DNA of 64,000 nt from Blepharisma stoltei ATCC 30299. Lineage: Eukaryota; Protista; Ciliophora. Every line of letters starts with the position of its first letter. Positions within the stretch are counted from its first letter, which is position 1. Below are positions 1,434-49,346 of the stretch, piece by piece. The DNA lies in the NCBI GenBank assembly GCA_965603825.1, contig CBFDEM010000005.1, positions 62,001 through 126,000 of the forward strand. The letters are read 5' to 3'. The position numbers were made by a program, and so were the translations under genes. Below the pieces are notes generated by a model. The model did not search any database and was not told where the DNA came from. It saw nothing but the letters and a program-made list of their open reading frames with translations.

Positions 1434-2785
1434 ATGATGGTTCCGAACGATAAAACATTAGAGCTTCTTTTTAGCTACAATAAAATAGTTAAAGATCTTG
1501 TTCAAAAATCAACTGTTGAGGATCCAATGTTTCAGAGGCATGCCATTAACAATGAATACGCTATCGATATCCAGAAATGGAGTGTTGAGTATTCGGATCT
1601 GACATCTCAAGTAGAGTCAATCAAGGCTTTATATCCAGACTTTTTTGTAGAAAATAATGACCTTGTAATGAATTTAGACTTGCTTCAAGAGCAAAATGTA
1701 GTTTATGTACTCCTTTACTCTGCAGTCATGCTTCAATGGCCTTCTTTGAACCCGACAGTCTTATTTTCTGTAGATGATATCAACAAAGGCACTGTTTTTG
1801 GATAAATTTGCTATAAATAGAATGAGATTAAATCTTGCATTTCTATCAAAAAATGAAGGTATTAATTTTTTGATAAATCAAAATACTCACAAGAACATTA
1901 GCACTTTATTTCTATATTAGGGCACGAGGTGGCAGTATTACTCTCAACTTAAATTTGTTTAGAGATAAAAATTACAAATGAAAAATGCGTAAGATTTTTC
2001 AAAAGAATGGGGGATTAGAAGCATTTTTTAGAAATATTTATCACACAAGCATTTGCAAGGAAGTTTATAGAGTTATTATACGTGCTGAAAATGAAAGTGA
2101 TTTTGAAGCTAAGCTTGCAGAACTATTTGAATATGCAATAGAGAATTCATATTATGTTCACCTTCCAACAGATCTGTATGGGTTCACAGCAATTGGCCAC
2201 AAAATATTCATATCATGCGAATACACTCCAGAAAAAGAAGAAATAAAAGTAGAAGAGGAAGAAGAAGAAGAAGAAGAGGATGAGGAAGAAGAAGAGGATG
2301 AGGATGAAGAAGAAGAGGAAGAGGAAATCGAAAATAAAGAAGAAGCAAAAAATGAATGAGAAGATCAATATAACAACTTAGAATATAAATTTGGATTTGG
2401 TCCTACACTGATAATACTTTTGCACGAAATAGCGAACCTTTCTTGTAGATTTTGGGAACAGCAAAATTCTTATTTTAGAATAACACCCAGAGACTACAAA
2501 AGCCCGTCAGATCCTGATAGATCATATCGAGAAATAGGAGACTATATCGAGTCGTTACTCTTTGGTGATAGGGTGCAAGGTCTTTATTATAAAGGGGAAG
2601 AGATTTTATTATATATTGATAACTGAAACTTGCCAATTAATGAGTTTCGATCTGAATTCCTAAAATGGCAAGAATATAGCAGAGCAAGAGGTTGCAAAGT
2701 ATACGATCTTTCAAGAGAAAATGGAATAGCCAACTGTGTTAAATTCGGCAGATGTGGAATGTCTAATTGAATTTCATGCTCATAA
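1434..2785 (+). pseudogene. HExxH metallopeptidase tandem copy 2, frameshifted
   Basis: Relative to copy 1: +1 G at ~1801 (giving TAA 1803-1805) and a 20-nt deletion at ~1885. HExxH has decayed to HEIAN. No GT..AG micro-intron rescues the frame. Downstream frame 1985-2785 stays open with TGA=Trp. Confidence 0.75.
2250..2345 (+). repeat. GAA/GAG/GAT trinucleotide tract (poly-Glu/Asp), expanded in copy 2
   Basis: Encodes EEEEEEEEDEEEEEDEDEEEEEEE; the equivalent linkers in copies 1 and 3 are different E/K-rich sequences. Confidence 0.85.
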
Positions 2786-2877
2786 TGCTTAAATTCCTAA
2801 TAATAAAGGACGTTGATTAATAGAAATTATCTAAATATATAAGTTTAGAGAAGATGAATTTATATGAATACTTTTAA

Positions 2878-3180
2878 TTATAATAGACGCTCCTAACTTC
2901 AGTTTAAATAGCTTATTGATGAAGCTTAAAACTTACACTATTATCGTCATTACTACAGCTTATACCTGACCTTGAAGCAAGCTCAATTGGCTCTATAAAC
3001 AACTTTCTAAGTTGAGGCTCAAATACCTAAGCAGTCTTACATTTTCTGACTCTTCTTGTGCCTAGATTGCTTATTTCTGGAATCTTCTTTTTAGCTCGTC
3101 ATTAAGCTGATCAAATGGAAATGAGCTTAATTTGTCAATTAATAAGTAGAAATTTTATCATTTTTGAATTGCTGATCCAA
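2878..3180 (-). pseudogene. Decayed fragment of the 3' end of the DHTKD1-like gene (source ~4968-5280)
   Basis: Clear alignment, e.g. tcttctttttagctcgtcattaagctgatcaaatggaaatg and tagaaattttatcatttttgaattgctga vs 5178-5270. Multiple frameshifts. Confidence 0.88.
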
Positions 3181-3209
3181 TCCCTCTTTTGCATAATTAT
3201 AAAAATAAA

Positions 3210-4568
3210 ATGATGGTTCCAAGCAACGAAGCATTAGAGCTTCTTTTCAGCTACAATAATATAGTTATGGATCTTATTGAAAAATCAACTGTTGAGGACC
3301 CCCTGCCAGAAAAAATAAAGCAGAGACATGCCTATTCCAAGCAATACACTATTGATATCCAGAAATGGAGTGTTGAGTATTCGGAGCTGACTTCTCAAGT
3401 AGATTCAATCAAGGCCTTATATCCAGACTTTTTTGTAGAAAATAATGACCCCGTAATGAATTTAGACTTGCTTCAAGAGCAAAATGTAGTTCATGTACTC
3501 CTTTACTCTGCAGTCATGTTTCAATGGCCTTCTTTGGACCCGGTAGTCTTTTTTTCTGCTGATGATATAAACAAGGGCACTGCTTTTAATAAAACTTCAA
3601 TAGATAGAATGAAGTTGAATCTTGAAATGCTTTCAAATTACGAATGTATTGATTTTTTGGTAAATCAAAATTTCGATGATGAAATCAAAACACTCCTAAG
3701 AACTTTGGCGCTCTATTTCTATATCAGAGCAAATGGTGGCAGCATTACACTCAATTTAAATTGCTTTATAGATAAAAAGTACAAATGAGAAATATGTAAG
3801 ATTTTTCAAAAGAATGGGAAATTAGAAACGTTTTTAAGAAATCTTTATCACACAAGTGTTTGCAAGGAGGCGTATAAAAGAATTATACTTGCTGAAGATG
3901 AAAGCGATTTTGAAGCTAAGCTTGAGCAGCTCTTTGATTATGCGATAGAGCATTCATATTATGCTAACCTTCCAAAAGGTCTTTATGGGCTCACAGCAAT
4001 TGGTCGCAAAATATTCATATCAAGCGAATACACTCAAAAAAAAGAAGAAGAAACAGAAGAAAAGAAAAAAAATGAGGAAGAGAAAGAGAAAGAGGAAAAA
4101 AAAGAAGAAGAAAAAATATTATCTGAATTAGAAGCAAAAGCAAGAGATGTAAATAAAGAGGAAGAATTTGAATTTGGATTTGGACCTACACTGATAATAC
4201 TTTTGCACGAAATAGCACACCTTGCTTCTAGATTTTGGGCCCAGCAAAATTCTTACTTTATAATAACGCCAAGGGATATCAAAAGCAAATCAGATCCTGA
4301 AAGATCATATGGAGAAAGAGGAGACTATCTTGAGACGTTACTTTTTGGCGACAGGCTGCAAGCTCTTTATAGAAGAGGGGAAGAAGTTTTATTAAATATT
4401 GAAAACTGAAACGTGCCAATAGATGATTTTCAGTCAGAATTCCTAAATATGCAAGAATTTAGCAAAGCAAATGGTGGCAAAGCATGCATCCTTTCAAGAG
4501 GAAATGAAATAACCAACTGTGTAAAATTCGGCAGATGTGGGATGTCTTATTGGACTTCACGTTCGTAA
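3210..4568 (+). CDS. HExxH putative zinc metallopeptidase, tandem copy 3 (intact, 452 aa)
   Basis: ATG 3210 to TAA 4566-4568 is open with two TGA=Trp. LLHEIAH...TP...GERGDYLETLLFG. C-terminal CVKFGRCGMSYWTSRS. Confidence 0.85.
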
Positions 4569-15698: not shown

Positions 15699-16214
15699 AT
15701 GAGCTTAGTTGACGCAACTTATGTTGAGCAATTTTCAAACCCCTTTTACAGATTCCACCCGTCCACAATTGAAGAGACACCAAACGGTCTTGCAGTCCTC
15801 GGCCACAACTTTGTTGCATCCCTGATTGTAAAATACGACCATCTCGACAAAGCATTAGCAAATGCCCTTTCCTTAAAAATCGACCAAGAAATGAAAAGAG
15901 TTTCTGATTCTCTTCACCACAAAGTAATTATTCCTGAGCTCAGTGACAAGTTTGCAATCTCCACTGCTGATGCCCACCATAGACTAAATTTACGTGAAGG
16001 AAAAGAGCATTTAACTTTTCCTGAAAGGGCTAGTGTGATTGTACCGATTTCAGACTGCTCCTTAAGAGAAATTGCGAATTACTTTGGGAGGAGGATTTTG
16101 GAACAAGTGGGAGTGCAAGAGTTTGTGACGGCAGGGGTCAAGAAGATTAAAGTGGAAATCAATTATAATGAGTCGATGAAGAAAGCTTCTGCCACTTTTG
16201 ATCTCAGGTCGTAA
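15699..16214 (+). CDS. 6-pyruvoyl-tetrahydropterin synthase (PTPS/QueD T-fold)-like protein with degenerate active site, 171 aa
   Basis: LGHNF, SDSLHHKVIIP, FPERASVIVPI..SLREIANY and IKVEI follow the long-insert PTPS pattern. First ATG at 15699. Confidence 0.65.
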   Translation: MSLVDATYVEQFSNPFYRFHPSTIEETPNGLAVLGHNFVASLIVKYDHLDKALANALSLKIDQEMKRVSDSLHHKVIIPELSDKFAISTADAHHRLNLREGKEHLTFPERASVIVPISDCSLREIANYFGRRILEQVGVQEFVTAGVKKIKVEINYNESMKKASATFDLRS

Positions 16215-16559
16215 TTAAATTCTATGAATTTTAGAAATTTTTTTATTTGGTTTATGAATAATTGTAAAAACAGATAATAAAATTCAGTCAGAAATTTTAA
16301 TTGTTTTTTATTGATTGCTTTTTATTGGGAAGAAAATCATAATTCCAAATTTTAAGCTAAAATTAATAAAAGTTCTGTAAAATTTATTTATGATGGCTTA
16401 AAGTATCAATTTTTTATCGCATTAAATATTCAGATAAATAATTTTTAAATAGAAATGCATTTTAATTTTTTATTTTAATTGTATTATTGAATTTGTATAA
16501 AAATAAGCCAGTTATTTCAATATTTTCTGTTTTTAATAAGCTAACTAAAAATTATATTA

Positions 16560-18014
16560 ATGGATGAATTTATTAGCCAAAGTTTTCAAAATAGAGTCAA
16601 CGACTATATCCAACAAAAAAGTTTAATAAATGAACAACAAAAAGTAAAGTCTATATAGAACAAAGCTCGAATAATCCTAGAAACCTGTGGATTTGTAAGA
16701 GACCCCTCGCGGCCAGCTGTTGATATGTAATTACTATATAGTGGCCCAGTTAAAGTTCTAAGCCAACAAAAATCTTCAAATGTAGCATCCTCAAATGAAG
16801 AGCCGCAGGACATTTATTCCTCAATTTGCATAAGATGTCAATCTCAAGATAAATTATTTTACAAAGTTGGACGTTTCGACCATAGTGAAATACCCTGTGG
16901 AATATTTTCTTTTACAGTCCTTGAAAAAATTTTATCAAAATCTCCAAATTTTTACATCCCAGTCCCAGAAACAATGGTTTTTAACTGTAATTTTGACTTG
17001 CCAATGCTAATTAAAAATAATGGAAACACTTTAGATATAACTCCATATAAGCGTGGACTCAAAGGACTAAAAAAATCAACAGTTTCCATGATGAAACCAC
17101 ATGATATAGAACCCAACAAAGTTTCTTGCCCAAAAGTAATTATCAAATTTCCAGGAAAAATAAAAAGACTAGTAAATAAGCTAAAAGAGTTGCCTGAAAG
17201 CTGGCCTGAAACAAATCAAGACGCAGTTATCCAAAGATTTATCAGACCAAAAGGACTTCGAGCTACAAAATACAGAGTCGTTTTAAAAGAAAATTTTAAC
17301 CCAAAAGTCTATATTTTTACTAATAGAGACCGATTTGACAGCCAAAACGACCCAATTCCTCATCATATAGCAGCCAATTCTCAATTTAATGATACAGAAA
17401 TCCTGCATGAAATTAAAAGAACTGTAATAGACCACAAGCAAATTTTAAAACTTTTGCATTCAAGTGTGTATAACCCCTATCTAAGGTCTCAATCAGCAGC
17501 TAAATTTTTGGATTTAAGCCAAGCTTCCCCTGAGAAAATGAAGGTTTTTGAATTATTTAATAATGATTATGGAGCTGCCCATAAGAAAAAAATTCAAAAA
17601 TTCAAAAGCATCACAATGACTGCAAGATACACAACAAAAACTGAGCAGAATAAATGCGATATTTATGAAGGAAAAACCCAGAGTTATGTGAAAATCATTG
17701 AAATGGCGTTATATATACAAGATAAAATTAATAAATTTGTCCTAAAAGACCGTGCTTTGTGTGAATTTGTTTTGGATTTTCTGCAGGATTATAAAGGAAA
17801 TTGATATTTTTTGAGGATTGAGTATGGGAAAACTAAAGAAATATCAAGGATGAAATTAAAGCCAAGATTAGGGAGGATTGATTTTAAAAGGCATAGTGAT
17901 GATAAAGGCGAGATAAAACAGGAATTGTCATATATTGACGATAAAAGATGATTATTTCCAAGGAAAAAAAGCCTAGGAGGAAAGCTGAATTTAAGCCTGA
18001 TTAACTGAAAATAA
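16560..18014 (+). CDS. Hypothetical protein with ATP-grasp-like motifs (474 aa, 2 introns)
   Basis: 15-nt introns 16644-16658 (gtaaagtctatatag) and 16727-16741 (gtaattactatatag) join ATG 16560 to ORF 16974. TGA read-through to TAA 18012. Motifs IPVPET, VIQRFI..KYRV, LDFLQDYKGNWYFL. Confidence 0.72.
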
Positions 18015-18037
18015 TGTAAATTTATATAAAAATACAT

Positions 18038-19261
18038 TTAAATAAAAAGATTTGCTTTGGAAAAGCTTCTTTTGCAACGCTTGTGAGAGGAAAGGACTAC
18101 AACTCTGTTCATGCTATCTAGTGATTCACTTTCTCGTAATAGACTTTCAAAGCCTCCACAAAGAGAAGGAGTTCTTAGCTCAGATACTGATTGCAAAATA
18201 TTTGCTGAAAATGAACTTTTAATAGACCTTCTTCTTGATGTCGATATTGATCTTGATACATTTGAATTTACTCTTTGAAGCTTTTTGGATAAAGAAATTT
18301 CTTCAGAAACCTGATTTTTGCTTTTTAATTCAGTCACAATTTTACTTAAATCTTTAAGTAAAACAGCTTCTTCAGGTAAAAATTTTTTTAAAAAATTATA
18401 AGCCTTTACACATATATTATAGCCATCAAAAAATGATCGCACATAGCATAATTCTTTTCCAATGCAAAATAAAGACAATCCAATTAAAATCACTTTATAA
18501 AGCAAGTAATCTTTTGTAAATTCTGACTGGATTCCGAAACGCACTGAAAAAACTTCTAAAGGGCAAGCAGAAATATCAATGACTTCTGATAAGGAGTAGT
18601 CAATAATCCATTGTGGGTGTCCAAGCACCCCAACTGAAGACCTAATTTCTATAACTTCTTGCAAATCTCCTTTTTCTAAAAAATTACTAATTGCTGACAG
18701 CGCAGGGAACGCTCTTTGAATCATCGCAGTCTTGCTTTGAGGTAATTTTCCTTCAACGCTCTTCACAAGCTGCTTTTTAGCAGCTATTGCTGTATTATTA
18801 ATTAAAGTCACGGAATGCTTATAAGCAAGTTTTGCCTTAACTAAGGCTTCATTATGTCTATTCTCTTTTGATAAAAGATTTGAAAACTGTAAGCAAAGGG
18901 AACTGAGATATTTATCTTTAACCATCTGCTCTTCTAGCATAGAACATTTTTGATTGTTAAACATAAGAGAATTTGCACGAAAGTAGCAGGTTTCCAAGCA
19001 TGTGATGCATTTATCTATAATATTTAATCTACTTGGGCGTTACTTGTGGTAGCATAAGGATAGGTTGTGTAGGATGGCAATTATAAGATCATAATCGAGG
19101 ACTTGCCCCTGATTTTCTAATGTGTAAAACATTGATTCACAGATTTCAAGACAGTTGATGGAGAGCTTATAGTCTTTAGCTTTTATTCTTTTATAAGCTT
19201 CAGTAGTAAACAAATTTGAAACTGATTTAATATCGCAGATGCCCTTGATAACTTCTGCCAT
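18038..19261 (-). CDS. Hypothetical TPR-like helical protein (402 aa, 1 intron)
   Basis: Intron 19029-19043 (gtaacgcccaagtag) joins two same-frame ORFs; ILHNLSLCY and LSKENRHNEAL are TPR-like. Confidence 0.72.
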
Positions 19262-19438
19262 TAAGCTGATTATTTTTCTATTAAATTTTCAAATGAACAA
19301 TCAATTGAATAATGTAGGCTTCTTTATTTAAGAAAATTTGTCGAAATATTCAAATTCGATGGTTTTAATTGTAAAAATGACAGATTCCTTATGAGTTAAA
19401 ATTTATCTAAGTCCTTTCCATATTTTAAGTGGTATAAA

Positions 19439-19954
19439 ATGCCTCCTAAAGTTGAGACCACAGATGCTCCTAGATACGGTAATTCCTAAGCAGTCTTCTT
19501 AAAATCCGTTGGTGGTGAAGTCGGTGCTGCAGCTTCTTTAGCTCCAAAAGTAGGTCCATTAGGTCTATCTCCAAAAAAGATTGGTGATGACATCAAAGCA
19601 GCCACAGAAGCATGGAAAGGCATCAAAGTTATGGTTAAGCTCACCATTGTAAACAGACAAGCAACAGTTGAAGTTGTTCCTTCAGCCTCTGCACTTGTGA
19701 TTAAAGAACTCGCAGAGCCACCAAGAGACAGAAAAAAGACTAAAAATATAAAACACAATGGCAACCTTAGTTGGGATCAAATCAGGAACATCGCAAAAAT
19801 CATGAGACCAAGATCAGGCGCAAAAACCTTTGAAGGCACCTTAAAAGAAATCGTCGGCACTTGTGTGTCAGTTGGCTGCACCATTGAAAAGAAGACTCCA
19901 AAAGAAATCATTGCAATGGTTGAAGGTGGAGAGTTGAACGTTAGCGAACCTTAA
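19439..19954 (+). CDS. RPL12: 60S ribosomal protein L12 (uL11)
   Basis: MPPK...[24 protein letters not shown] after removing intron 19479-19493 (gtaattcctaagcag); [21 protein letters not shown]. Confidence 0.97.
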
Positions 19955-19968
19955 CTAAAAACTCTTTA

Positions 19969-20445
19969 TTAATCACATTTTTTGCCTGTTATCCCACTAA
20001 GGGATTCCAGTCTTACATGGTTAAAATTTTCTTTACGTCGAAAATGTTGGTTAAGTCTGATGCGGATGATCCCTTGTAGGTTGATATTGTTTGCTGGGAC
20101 TATTTTTGACCTATATAAGTCATCTATATATGATGATCTTGAATAATGGTGGCCTTTAGGTGGTGATTGATCGTGGTTAACTATATTTAGAACGTTTTTA
20201 ATAGGAGCTCTCAATTCTGAGCGTGTATAAGCGCCTCCTAACTCTTTGTGTTTTTTATAGCTCAAATTGTTCTCGTATCTATCGGTACTACTGCCGCTTT
20301 CAAATAGACCATTGAAATCTATGAGTCGGTCCACTGCTAATTGTCCATATAGTCTTCCGTTGTGTTTGCGTGTGGTCACAGCGCCAATTGACTTTGCTTG
20401 AGCTTTATAAGGCTTGATATTTTGTAAAAATTCAGTAGGCTGCAT
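19969..20445 (-). CDS. Hypothetical basic protein (158 aa)
   Basis: ATG-TAA ORF filling the space between neighbours; no recognisable family. Confidence 0.6.
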   Translation of the reverse strand: MQPTEFLQNIKPYKAQAKSIGAVTTRKHNGRLYGQLAVDRLIDFNGLFESGSSTDRYENNLSYKKHKELGGAYTRSELRAPIKNVLNIVNHDQSPPKGHHYSRSSYIDDLYRSKIVPANNINLQGIIRIRLNQHFRRKENFNHVRLESLSGITGKKCD

Positions 20446-21501: not shown

Positions 21502-21687
21502 TTATGATGGCGCCTCTTCATCTGTTATAATTTTAATTCTGTATACAATTCCACCAATGACGTAGCTCTTTTCTTTTGAGAAATCAAAAGAATAAGTAAG
21601 TTTTCTGTAGCTTGTATTTAGATTAGCAGATGAGTTAGTCTCATCTGGCATCTTGTTTGATCGTTTTCGACTTATTCCACAACCCAT
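21502..21687 (-). CDS. MGC-acylated microprotein A (61 aa)
   Basis: MGCGIS N-terminus (myristoyl/palmitoyl pattern); C-terminal SYVIGGIVYRIKII motif shared with 22969 and 48689. Confidence 0.75.
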   Translation of the reverse strand: MGCGISRKRSNKMPDETNSSANLNTSYRKLTYSFDFSKEKSYVIGGIVYRIKIITDEEAPS

Positions 21688-22968
21688 TTATTAAAATATA
21701 ATCACATTTTCTATTACTCCATTTCTATGGATTTCTAGAATACTAACAAAAATTTCGAACCAAGGAAAGTAGTGGATAATTGGATTTACTGTCTTTTTGG
21801 AAGGCTTATCACGTTTTTAAAGCTATTATTGGTGTGATCGGCACTATGAAAGTTGAAAATATTGAAATTAGCATTATTAAAACACTTAAGAAAATATAGG
21901 GATATTTTATAAGAAGAACGAAAAGCAAGTAAATTATATCAAAATTGTTGTGAGAATTAATTTTTGAGATCTCTATGATATTGTTATGACTATTGTACTT
22001 TAAAAATACCATTATTCGGAAAATTGATTTTTTTATACAAACAGATATGAGAAAGCGAAAAATTTTTGAATTTTATTGAGTTTAATAAAAGTTGTATGAG
22101 CTGATAATTTCTTTTTTAAAGAATTTTATAGAGCTGTAATGCACTTGATCTATTTTAGACATTATTAAAGCTATTTATTATTTCTAATTTAATTTATTAT
22201 GATAATTCTTATTTCACTGGTTGCATTAATTCAAAAATAATATACTTTTCTCTATCTGGAATAGCTTATGCGTCCATAAAATGCTATCTAATATAGTTGT
22301 GGTTAAAATCTTTCTAGCAAATAAAATTTTTATTTAAATTAATTGTATTAATAGGAATTTATTTAATATAATACCTTCATATAGCCAGTAATCATTTTTA
22401 CCTAAATAATTAATTTAAATAAGAAAAAAGAAATTAAATTCAAAAAGAAAGTCTCTGAATTATTAAAAATTAAAAGTCGTCCTATAGTTTCCATCTCATC
22501 AGATTACTATAAAATTTAAATATTAAGCTTGAAATACTTAGCAAAACAGATTTTCTCATAACACAGGAAAATAGAAAAATTAATTTTCGTTATCCGAAAA
22601 ACTTATGAAATTTGCTCTTTTATATTAATTTCAATATAAAATAATTAAACAGTTACATTGAAAATTAAAAATCTAGAACAGTAGCTATCAGAAATAATTT
22701 AGTCTAAATTCTGGCATCACTTACAAAAAACCCTCCATTTTTTTATCGATAACGGTTGCACAAAAACTCAGTAAGACCGACTAAATGAATTAATTAACAC
22801 AGATTATTTAATTTCATTTAATTAAAGCTTTCCCATCCAAAACCCATAAAACCCAACATTAAGTTTAAAAAAAAATTAAAAATCTCTTAAAATTGTGTAT
22901 TTAATTAAATAATAAAAATTCTTGCATATAAACAAGCTACTTATATATTTATATGGACATCTGTAATC

Positions 22969-23163
22969 TTAATTTTCCACTGTTATCGACTCGGGTGGAA
23001 CAACTTGTATTTTGAAAACTTTGCTTTTCACTTTATAGTGTTTGCCTCCATAGTAGAGAGATTTAGTAAACTCTTTGTCATCTGTTTCAACGATACTTGG
23101 CGTCTCGTTTTTGTTGGTTTGCAAAGCCAATTTGTTTCCTTTGACTGGCAATCCGCAACCCAT
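22969..23163 (-). CDS. MGC-acylated microprotein B (64 aa)
   Basis: MGCGLP N-terminus; HYKVKSKVFKIQVV motif. Confidence 0.75.
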   Translation of the reverse strand: MGCGLPVKGNKLALQTNKNETPSIVETDDKEFTKSLYYGGKHYKVKSKVFKIQVVPPESITVEN

Positions 23164-23767
23164 ATTTTAATTTTTATAAATGGTCATAATTTTGGTATAG
23201 ATTTGCATAAAATGCAATTGCCCCACTAATTCTAGCTCAGATAAGGCTCAATAGTGAAATATGAATCAATGCTTCATTTCAGAGAAATATAATCTAACAC
23301 AATATCTATAGTTAATTTCTGTAAAGCATTTTTTTGTTCCAAACTTATGCGTTTTACTTTTTGTTTACTGAATGTGGCTGATTTTTGAATATAAATAATA
23401 AATTAGATAGGGCACAGCTATCATAAATTGTTTAACATATTTCCATAATAATTAACTATAAAGTTTTAAAAGAAAAATATCAATGCATAAAGAAAAGGCA
23501 TCCGATTTCTTAATGACTCGTCCAGGTATAAATTTATGAATTATCATAGATTCATATCTAAACCACATGATCAGCTTAAAAATATTTACCTTATAGATTG
23601 ACTAAAAAAAGACCACATGATACTTAATTCGACATTATTCTGGTTTGATCCTTGAAAAATTGGAAAATTCACCTTATAGTTCCCAAAAAACATTATTTTT
23701 TATCACAATTATTATAATTCCACAAAAACTTCATATCATACATATTTTAAGGTGTTATTAATCTAAT

Positions 23768-41164: not shown

Positions 41165-43096
41165 ATGGGATGCTGCGAAGGCAGAGGGGGTAATGAAGAT
41201 ATAGAGGACGCGAAAAAGCAGCCGACAATGGACAAGGCAAAGCTAGTGAAAAAAGTCCCTAAAGAGATTGATATTGAAGATATTAATTCTGAAGCATCAG
41301 ACAATGAAAACCCTCAAATAAACCCCCAAATTGTTAACCAAGATGAAAATACTGTTCAGAACGGCAGAGAAAGATATAAAAATAAAGCAAAGCAAGAGAA
41401 GCGGAAAGAAATTGAAGCCAATGGTATAGGTAATTCCGGAAAAAATGAAAATGGAGGTTCAAATAAACTAAAATCTGAGGAAATACAACTAATAAAAATT
41501 GAAGAAAATAAAGAATTGGAAAAAGAAAATCCTATCCAAAATGAAGTCGTTATAAAAATAGATACTTCGAAAATCATCCAAAGCGATTATAGCCCTCAAT
41601 TATCTTCAAATAATCATACTAGTCCTCTATCTAAAATTGAACTAATTGAAATTTTTCAAAATTTAGATAAAGGGTATTACAAAAACCCAGAAAATAAAAA
41701 ATTAATTACACCGGAATTAATTATAAGACTGATAGCTTCACTTAAGGATAGAGACTCAGAAATTATTGAACTTGCTCTTAAAGATTTGCTTGGCTTGCTA
41801 AAACTTCCAATTAGTTATGATAGCGGAGAAGTTTTATATGAAGATGATGCTTTATATCAAATAAATTGCCTTCTTCACGATATGGATGAAATGCTAAGAT
41901 TTTTAGCTTCAAAACTTGTCAGAGAAATGCTGAAACAAAAATCATTAGAAGTAGACATGATTAAAAGATACCAAAAAGGAGCGATAATTGCTGCGTTAGT
42001 TCAAGCAAACCCTAATTTTACTAGTCCGAAGTATTTGAAAAGTAATCTTCATACTTTATTTCACTTTGTGTATGATTCAGATCATGAAATTATAGTTAGC
42101 AATCAAGAAATATTGTTTTTCAATAATATGATACACCTTCTAAACCAAACTCAATTGGTAATTTTAACATAGAAAATCCCTAAATTATCCACTCACCCAG
42201 ACTGAAACTTATATGATCTAAAAATCATGAAATTAATTGAAGACCTCAAAAATGACGCAAAAATAGATTTAAATGAAAGAAAAAGCTTGATTTCCCCTAG
42301 ACAATCATATTCTTCATTTTCGTCAGAAACTGAGTAAGATTTACTTAGTACTATTTTCCCTTTGAATATCTATAAATATTCATTAGAAGACCTTATCGCA
42401 GAACTCAATACTCCACGTCGAATTAAATCTACATTATTAAACGAAACATGGGCAGAAGCCCCTACAACTGTAGGCTCCCTTTCAGCTGCCCGAATGGCTG
42501 AGCTTTTTGCTGATAAAATCCTGGATGACCCAAAAACAATATCCCTAATAATTCAGACAAATGCTATTGAAAAATTAAGAGAAAATTTAAAAAGCAGGCT
42601 CAGAGATAAAAGAGAGTCCGCAATGATTTGCCTTTTGCATATGGTTCAGCCTCAATATCCTGAATTATGCGACTTATTTATGAATGATGAAGGCTTAGCT
42701 CTAGCATTTACATTTTTACAGGATAATAAAGAAGGAATGAGGGCAGCTGCAGTTGATATACTAAGAGGGTACTATTTTAATCGTCCAGAAGCTATAGAAA
42801 GAATTAGAAAATGTGGGCTTGATTTTGTTGGAGAGATCATATCAGTTTTAACTGGATTAAATAGCCCAAGTAATGTTAGTGTGGTGCTGCTAAATATAAG
42901 AGATATGTTTGTTAATGAAGAAGGAGAGACTAATAGAGAAGTTCTTAATCTTTGGAAAAATAAAGGACTTAATGAAGCTTTGGAAAAAATTGATATAGAA
43001 AAATTGAAATTAGATGCGGAGTATCCTATGTATGGAAATCAAATAATTGATTCCATAAATACAATGAAAGAAGAACTTTTATCTGAAGACTCATAA
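41165..43096 (+). CDS. MGCC-acylated armadillo/HEAT-repeat protein (633 aa, 2 introns)
   Basis: Introns 42158-42172 and 42334-42348 join ORFs 41165 and 42362. Helical repeats (EMLRFLASKLV / EGMRAAAVDIL). Confidence 0.78.
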
Positions 43097-48688: not shown

Positions 48689-48883
48689 CTACTCAACCTC
48701 TATATTGCTGTGATCATGATTTTCATTAACCTTTATAACATAAGCAACACCTTGGACGATGAATTTCAGCTCAGGATTGACTATTACCATATTTTGCGAC
48801 TGCTGAAGTACTGTAGCTCGTCTTACAGGAGTAGTATCGCCTTCACTGAGAAATTTTTCCTTTTTCGAAATTGCACAGCCCAT
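48689..48883 (-). CDS. MGC-acylated microprotein C (64 aa)
   Basis: MGCAIS N-terminus; KFIVQGVAYVIKV motif. Confidence 0.75.
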   Translation of the reverse strand: MGCAISKKEKFLSEGDTTPVRRATVLQQSQNMVIVNPELKFIVQGVAYVIKVNENHDHSNIEVE

Positions 48884-49346
48884 ATATCTTATTGATTATA
48901 ATTACTCTTGTGTGGATAAATGGACATTTTTCTTTCTAAAGCAACTTAAGCAGCTTATTTCTGTAACTGTTTTAATGTATTTTTAAATATCCTCTCTTAT
49001 AAAAAGAAGTAAAAAAGTCTTTATAAATTTATTATACGGTCGCGATACTATAAATAATATATTTTTTATTTCTATTTGCACAAATAAATTCCATTCTTAA
49101 CCTCAAATAATTTTCTACTTCTCTTTATATTAAAAAATTACTTAGAGCAGCCACACAATTAGCAATAAAAAAACTCTGAAAAACTAAAAATTTCGGTCCC
49201 TTTTATCAGAAAAAATCCCAAACAACCAAATTTGAGTAAAAATAACGTTGCGAATATGTTTTGCCTTATAAATTATTGACAATAAAAATAATTCTTTCAT
49301 TTCTTTATTATCCTCATAAAACTGATAAATCACTACTTTAACTGTA

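Follow-up and report, generated by a model that had tools for sequence, protein, structure and literature searches.

We analysed a stretch of 64,000 nucleotides (nt), hereafter the window, which corresponds to contig 5 positions 62001–126000 of the macronuclear assembly of the ciliate Blepharisma stoltei ATCC 30299. Three short open reading frames (ORFs) on its minus strand, referred to as A, B and C, encode proteins of 61–64 amino acids (aa) that begin with Met-Gly-Cys (MGC). Comparison with sequences from the rest of the genome indicated that A, B and C are very probably real genes of a microprotein family whose members combine the MGC start with a predicted C-terminal β-hairpin. As an overall explanation, we favor, with moderate confidence, functional genes missing from the annotation whose products would act as lipid-anchored hairpins. 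The published macronuclear genome of this strain consists of 64 telomere-to-telomere contigs, has introns of 15–16 nt and uses UGA as a tryptophan codon (PMC9942806). The genome searches described below covered 41.46 Mb in 64 contigs.

Gene A (21502..21687, minus strand) encodes 61 aa and ends with TAA, gene B (22969..23163, minus strand) encodes 64 aa and ends with TAA, and gene C (48689..48883, minus strand) encodes 64 aa and ends with TAG; all three are unannotated. A preliminary description, made from the sequence alone, had located three small MGC-starting frames in the window, and we found all of them intact at exactly those positions. None of the three contains an in-frame TGA, and thus the reassigned UGA codon leaves them unchanged. 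Among the 217 ATG-started ORFs of 40 aa or longer in the window, translated with the Blepharisma code, only four begin with MGC, namely A, B, C and a 335-aa protein. The latter (41165–42172, plus strand) begins with MGCCEGRGG, another predicted acylation-type N-terminus, and matched neither Pfam nor the profile of the microprotein family. The three genes lie in non-coding surroundings, as had been noted previously, with ORF-free stretches of 360–1281 nt under the Blepharisma code. Downstream of A, 1056 nt are free of ORFs; A and B are separated by 1281 nt, the stretch upstream of B measures 604 nt, and C is bordered by 360 and 463 nt. A scan of these spacers for Rfam matches and notable repeats detected none, and long spacers are a property of the entire microprotein family. 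Pairwise identity among A, B and C was 22–29%; the C-terminal motif they had been proposed to share is real but weak when only these three are compared.

A profile was built solely from the 32 family members that lie elsewhere in the genome and was run against 1152 six-frame segments of the window. A, B and C ranked first, second and third (E values of 5.8e-8, 3e-7 and 9.9e-6, respectively), and the next segment had an E value of about 1. When the profile omitted the first 12 residues, the three genes still occupied ranks 1, 2 and 4 in the window (E 0.004–0.046). An alternative view is that the three frames are open by chance or belong to other genes as first exons or upstream ORFs, and their very small size and absence from the deposited annotation would agree with this. 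We rejected it because of the held-out test, in which a profile blind to all three recovered them with E values from 6e-8 to 1e-5. The rarity of the MGC start in the window also speaks against chance, and the reading as exons of other genes is opposed by their TAA or TAG stops, the lack of any continuing frame and a distance of 0.36–1.3 kb to the nearest same-strand genes. We consider this alternative extremely improbable.

The family was delineated by iterated profile searches of the B. stoltei contigs followed by ORF extraction from the fetched regions. The number of genome matches rose from 5 to 11, 22 and 28 over successive rounds, and ORF extraction yielded at least 35 intact paralogs of 54–82 aa (median, 74 aa), every one of which (35/35) starts with MGC; the count is a lower bound. 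The preliminary description of a family of three ORFs of about 60 aa was thus right as to the family, for which the genome-wide scan found further homologs, but too small in both membership and protein length. Most members form same-strand tandem arrays with a period of approximately 0.8–2.2 kb on contigs other than that of the window. Contig 11 carries 10 members at 300980–316119 and three at 613908–616243, contig 32 carries seven at 500456–510683, contig 14 carries four at 613273–615781, and contig 57 carries two. One member each was found on contigs 32, 33, 36, 37, 44 and 62, and contig 5, which includes the window, has the three members A, B and C.

The contig 11 and contig 32 arrays are collinear paralogous blocks. 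The strongest DNA matches between them (E below 1e-15) centered on the ORFs with some 100 nt of additional sequence; in the spacers, only weak and scattered matches occurred. A 175–196-aa protein beginning with MGN..FGCCD adjoins both arrays (contig 11, 298000–316500; contig 32, 497000–512000). On contig 11, two ORFs that resemble dual-specificity phosphatases by eye (299655–300149 and 314635–315126) lie at one end of the array and within it. In the family tree, the sequences fell into two clades, one of 9 rows and one of 28 rows. A, B and C all belong to the 28-row clade, but they are not one another's nearest relatives. B was placed as sister to a member on contig 37, designated D (support 99/94).

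Annotation of eukaryotic genomes routinely misses small proteins of fewer than about 70 residues, and the deposited record of this family follows that pattern. The entries for members of 71–79 aa bear the titles 'unnamed protein product' or 'Uncharacterized protein', whereas six members of 54–64 aa (A, B, C, D and two others) had no exact match in a collection of 15 billion proteins. The earlier expectation that gene callers would miss the family therefore held for the six members of 54–64 aa that were looked up, and failed for those of 71 aa or more. Examples of the deposited paralogs are CAG9313687, CAG9322660, CAG9313915 and CAG9315924 (72–79 aa; 'Uncharacterized protein' in UniRef). They are true paralogs of A, B and C with the same MGC start, hairpin module and tandem-array organization, and the difference is that they were called by the AUGUSTUS-based pipeline, whereas A, B and C, at 61–64 aa, were not. 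The published annotation was produced with AUGUSTUS in intronless mode on an intron-removed genome (bioRxiv 10.1101/2021.12.14.471607). An effective length bias of the caller against very short genes would fit the annotation pattern. Three real genes sit in what seems to be unusually long intergenic DNA because the caller dropped the smallest members of the family.

The anatomy of the proteins was derived from two family alignments, one of them containing 24 sequences, and from position counts over the 35 members. Met1, Gly2 and Cys3 were invariant (35/35), position 4 was Gly in 27/35, and position 8 was Lys or Arg, usually Lys, in 28/35. A basic patch follows position 8, and most members of the two long arrays then have an acidic EEGDTSL-like stretch. 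Next comes a variable linker, followed by the conserved module [FY]x[FY]x[VI]xGxx[YF]xIx[VI], which spans about 15 residues. A shorter form of it, [FY]x[VI]xGxx[YF]xIx[VI], is present in A, B and C, with Ser replacing the turn Gly in B. The 'acidic tail' of the preliminary description did not prove to be a family feature; what follows the hairpin in most members is a Pro (in at least 90% of rows of the 24-sequence alignment), usually within [ST]-P-[DEN]. At this site, A has T-D, B has P-P-E and C has no counterpart. The nine-row clade has the motif EKRKxYxIR[IV]FxP..GL and seems to keep the second strand only.

The proposal of a conserved β motif was supported by AlphaFold2, which predicted a hairpin at residues 39–52 of A (strands 39–44 and 47–52; 21532..21573, minus strand). 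With the 24-sequence alignment as input, the mean predicted local distance difference test (pLDDT) score was 89 for residues 41–50, and the remainder of the model was of low confidence. On the basis of this model, the C-terminal module is a predicted amphipathic β-hairpin, and the low-confidence linker is probably disordered. A homodimer prediction for A scored 0.01; it was run without an alignment and speaks neither for nor against binding. Known short motifs were also considered by eye and dismissed. The key residues of calcineurin PxIxIT, PP1 RVxF, LC8 TQT-type, SUMO-interacting and LC3-interacting region (LIR) motifs were not conserved across members, and a cyclin-dependent kinase (CDK)-type [ST]Px[KR] site occurred only in some members of the long arrays.

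Base composition and substitution patterns are those of coding sequences under constraint. The mean GC content of the ORFs was 36% versus 23–25% in the flanks, and the ORF exceeded both flanks in 35/35 members. For A, B and C, the ORF values were 0.34–0.38 against 0.22–0.28 in the flanks (for A alone, 0.34 against 0.28 and 0.26). In the closest paralog pairs, the synonymous divergence (dS) was >1, and the nonsynonymous divergence (dN) was 0.24–0.33, with dN/dS ratios of 0.17–0.28. We also identified a segmental duplication that links window positions 16065–19983 to contig 37 positions 140001–142731. The duplicated block contains a 346-aa gene (approximately 70% DNA identity) and an RPL12-like gene (86%), and microprotein genes come next in both copies (A and B in the window, D on contig 37). 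B and D are both intact beside these paralogous blocks, although their own DNA no longer aligns. Another neighbor of A and B, a 308-aa ORF at 18038–18964 (minus strand), matched only its own B. stoltei entry in a word-based search. It is deposited as a 402-aa 'RTR1-type domain-containing protein', indicating that the annotated gene extends further 5'.

Relatives outside the B. stoltei genome were sought with an exhaustive HMMER search of 1.84 billion representative proteins. The search returned 12 matches, consisting of nine B. stoltei paralogs, an MMETSP transcript product (P0006), a protein from a sister organism (P0014) and a 775-aa repeat protein. The last matched over a short stretch only and was regarded as spurious, and no other credible relative beyond Blepharisma, P0006 and P0014 was present among the proteins searched. 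P0006 differs from the contig 11 member at 613908–614147 in 9 of 79 residues and comes from a transcriptome; at least that branch of the family is therefore transcribed in a close relative. P0014 (63 aa) was found in the Logan assembly of run SRR24908292, at a locus syntenic with the contig 14 array. Its identity to the B. stoltei members does not exceed 36%, but MGCG and the Y.IRI..P..IGL motif are retained, and the flanking genes are 42–78% identical.

The sister organism has one family member at this locus (positions 1715–4406 of the SRR24908292 Logan contig, here L035) versus four in B. stoltei (contig 14, 613121–616306). One copy against four, low identity and the retained MGCG and motif together indicate fast birth-and-death evolution with preservation of the start and the motif. 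Two very short MGC-started frames, at L035 3111 and 3589, lack any remnant of the hairpin motif and are not claimed as family relics. Directly after the contig 14 array lies a 277–278-aa protein that starts with MGCG (616306–617139, plus strand), and its syntenic counterpart is at L035 4406–5242 (plus strand). This protein is 42% identical between the two organisms, compared with 72–78% for the other two flanking genes. We conclude that the family evolves by tandem and segmental duplication and by fast divergence, under purifying selection.

The family appeared to be undescribed, as had been supposed at the outset. Pfam scans of 24 members (A, B, C and 21 others) gave no family above noise, a profile search of PDB sequences gave no significant relative (one marginal match, E 0.058), and our literature search found no paper combining Blepharisma with myristoylation. 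The ESM Atlas provided no usable match, and its own model had a pLDDT of 0.25.

The genes also share a short element upstream of the start codon. The element that the preliminary description had reported for B and C is present at 23176..23187 (ATAAATGGTCAT on the plus strand; core beginning 20 nt before the ATG) and at 48916..48927 (ATAAATGGACAT on the plus strand; core beginning 40 nt before the ATG), with the common plus-strand form ATAAATGG[TA]CAT. A has the core as well (21719..21724, 37 nt before the ATG), which reads CCATTT on the plus strand and AAATGG on the strand of the gene. An AAATGG/CCATTT core within 150 nt upstream, in either orientation, was found in 21/35 members (binomial P of approximately 1e-8), compared with 17% of random windows, 15% of low-GC windows and 5/31 upstream regions of long ORFs in the window. 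Extended beyond the core, the consensus reads WAAATGG[CT]. Because the element was retained while the surrounding DNA diverged beyond alignment, these sequences suggest that it is a shared regulatory site. In the forward orientation, AAATGG would create an upstream ATG if transcribed.

Well-established dually acylated proteins, among them Gαi and the Src-family kinases, begin with MGC. Every member of the Blepharisma family (35/35) has Gly2 followed by an allowed residue, Cys, at position 3 of the PROSITE-type N-myristoylation pattern, G-{EDRKHPFYW}-x(2)-[STAGCN]-{P} after Met1. At position 6, A and C have Ser, which fits the pattern, and B has Pro, which does not. N-myristoylation of Gly2 together with palmitoylation of Cys3 is the best explanation of these N-termini because neither Gly2 nor Cys3 varies among paralogs in which change is otherwise saturated and because a basic residue is conserved at position 8. 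Judged on these features, the members are likely to be lipid-anchored. Two contig 11 members (300980–301240 and 313203–313448) have an in-frame upstream ATG whose use would add 11 or 8 residues, respectively, before MGC and would remove the N-terminal glycine. In the former, the extension passes through a TGA (Trp) codon, and the deposited protein, P0011, begins at MGC.

A different reading accepts the genes as real but not the anchor: the MGC start would be no lipidation signal, the proteins would be soluble, and Gly2/Cys3 would reflect an N-terminal glycine degron, a redox-active or metal-binding cysteine, or a constraint on initiation. This gains from position 6, since only 16/35 members fit the classical pattern and 14/35, including B, have Pro6, which also counts against the lipid-anchor reading in general. 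Pro6 is nevertheless tolerable, as shown by human SVIP, a 77-aa protein with the start MGLCFPCPGE (Pro6) for which experiments have shown myristoylation of G2 and palmitoylation of C4 and C7 (PMC11310202). Moreover, Gly2 and Cys3 are invariant in all 35 members and in both outside relatives despite saturated divergence elsewhere, and the Lys or Arg at position 8 in 28/35 members fits a myristoyl-plus-basic membrane switch. We regard the soluble alternative as unlikely and retain lipid anchoring as the preferred reading.

Other observations also weigh against functional, lipid-anchored hairpin proteins encoded by A, B and C. The hairpin prediction rests on a shallow alignment, and a second model, of the array member P0003, reached a pLDDT of 84 over the same block with the strands unassigned. 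Since paralogs share ancestry, the persistence of the upstream motif among them is not an entirely independent argument. In the family tree, A, B and C are placed on long branches, and they have neither the EEGDTSL stretch nor the C-terminal tail (S.VF) found in members of the long arrays. Finally, the kinase adjacent to C has an 83% identical ortholog (P0015) on an SRR24908292 Logan contig, and no C ortholog or MGC ORF was present in the 607 nt upstream of it; the contig ends there, and the upstream DNA is unalignable.

These last points, together with the fact that A, B and C are shorter and have diverged further than the rest of their clade, could mean that the three are decaying or non-functional copies and that the functional members are the longer, annotated ones in the contig 11, 32 and 14 arrays. 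However, the frames of A, B and C are uninterrupted and begin exactly with MGC, all three genes retain the hairpin module as well as the upstream element, and their GC content is raised over the flanks as in the rest of the family. B and D have remained intact beside the RPL12 blocks since a duplication too old for their DNA to align. An unselected frame of 60 codons in such AT-rich DNA would soon gain a TAA or TAG. Decay is thus, in our judgment, improbable, and we continue with A, B and C as functional genes.

If the products are lipid-anchored as predicted, Met1 would be removed, N-myristoyltransferase would acylate Gly2, and a DHHC palmitoyltransferase would acylate Cys3. The acyl groups and the basic residues would then hold the protein at a membrane, on its cytosolic face. 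The hairpin, being too small to fold alone, may bind a partner by strand addition, and the protein would recruit or block this partner at the membrane, much as VCP is recruited by the dually acylated SVIP. By analogy with such proteins, an adaptor mechanism specifically is conceivable, although we hold it only tentatively and at somewhat less than even confidence. A further and rather improbable idea is that the family is a diversifying set of membrane-tethered hairpins, each tuned to a different member of an expanded signaling-enzyme family and all switched on together through the AAATGG element. The candidate partners would be the dual-specificity-phosphatase-like genes at the contig 11 array or the large heterotrich kinome.

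At present, the work stands as a solid gene-family discovery with an inferred mechanism. The family is large (at least 35 genes) and lineage-restricted, and it pairs the best-known membrane-anchor signal, as predicted, with a new hairpin module. Were lipidation and a partner to be demonstrated, ciliate biology would gain an SVIP-like set of membrane recruiters and also a clean case of birth-and-death evolution in microproteins. Should the tuned-hairpin idea hold, the family would represent microprotein regulators of a new class, lipid-anchored and subject to birth-and-death evolution.

Several known systems share parts of this design. The MGC N-termini of Src-family kinases and Gαi/o (SH4-type) combine Met-Gly-Cys with basic residues as a myristoyl-plus-palmitoyl membrane anchor, and smAKAP is a small, dually acylated anchor of about 100 aa that presents one short binding element. 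The Blepharisma proteins differ from these in that they have no kinase, Gα or A-kinase-binding helix domain but a predicted hairpin without known relatives. The C4/AC4 proteins of geminiviruses carry N-acyl groups and act on signaling proteins of the host at membranes. They are described as small and rapidly evolving (PMC13617785). They are viral and unrelated in sequence to the Blepharisma family, so that the analogy is one of architecture only.

SVIP is the best model for how the Blepharisma proteins may act. It is similar in size, it carries Gly2 myristoylation and palmitoylation of nearby Cys residues, which have been shown for SVIP and are only predicted for the Blepharisma family, and it uses one short binding motif to recruit VCP to membranes (PMC11310202). 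The two nevertheless have no sequence relationship detectable in the Pfam scans of the 24 members. The VCP-interacting motif of SVIP lies at residues 18–35, whereas the Blepharisma proteins have a predicted C-terminal β-hairpin, and the Cys residues of SVIP are at positions 4 and 7 rather than 3. SVIP is not known to have undergone a similar tandem expansion. Neither the hairpin module nor the family has described relatives; a dual lipid anchor joined to one short binding element is a known architecture. What is new here is the recognition of two clades of a single family of at least 35 members, three unannotated and divergent members of it, a family-wide upstream element, and the precedent that SVIP provides for Pro6.

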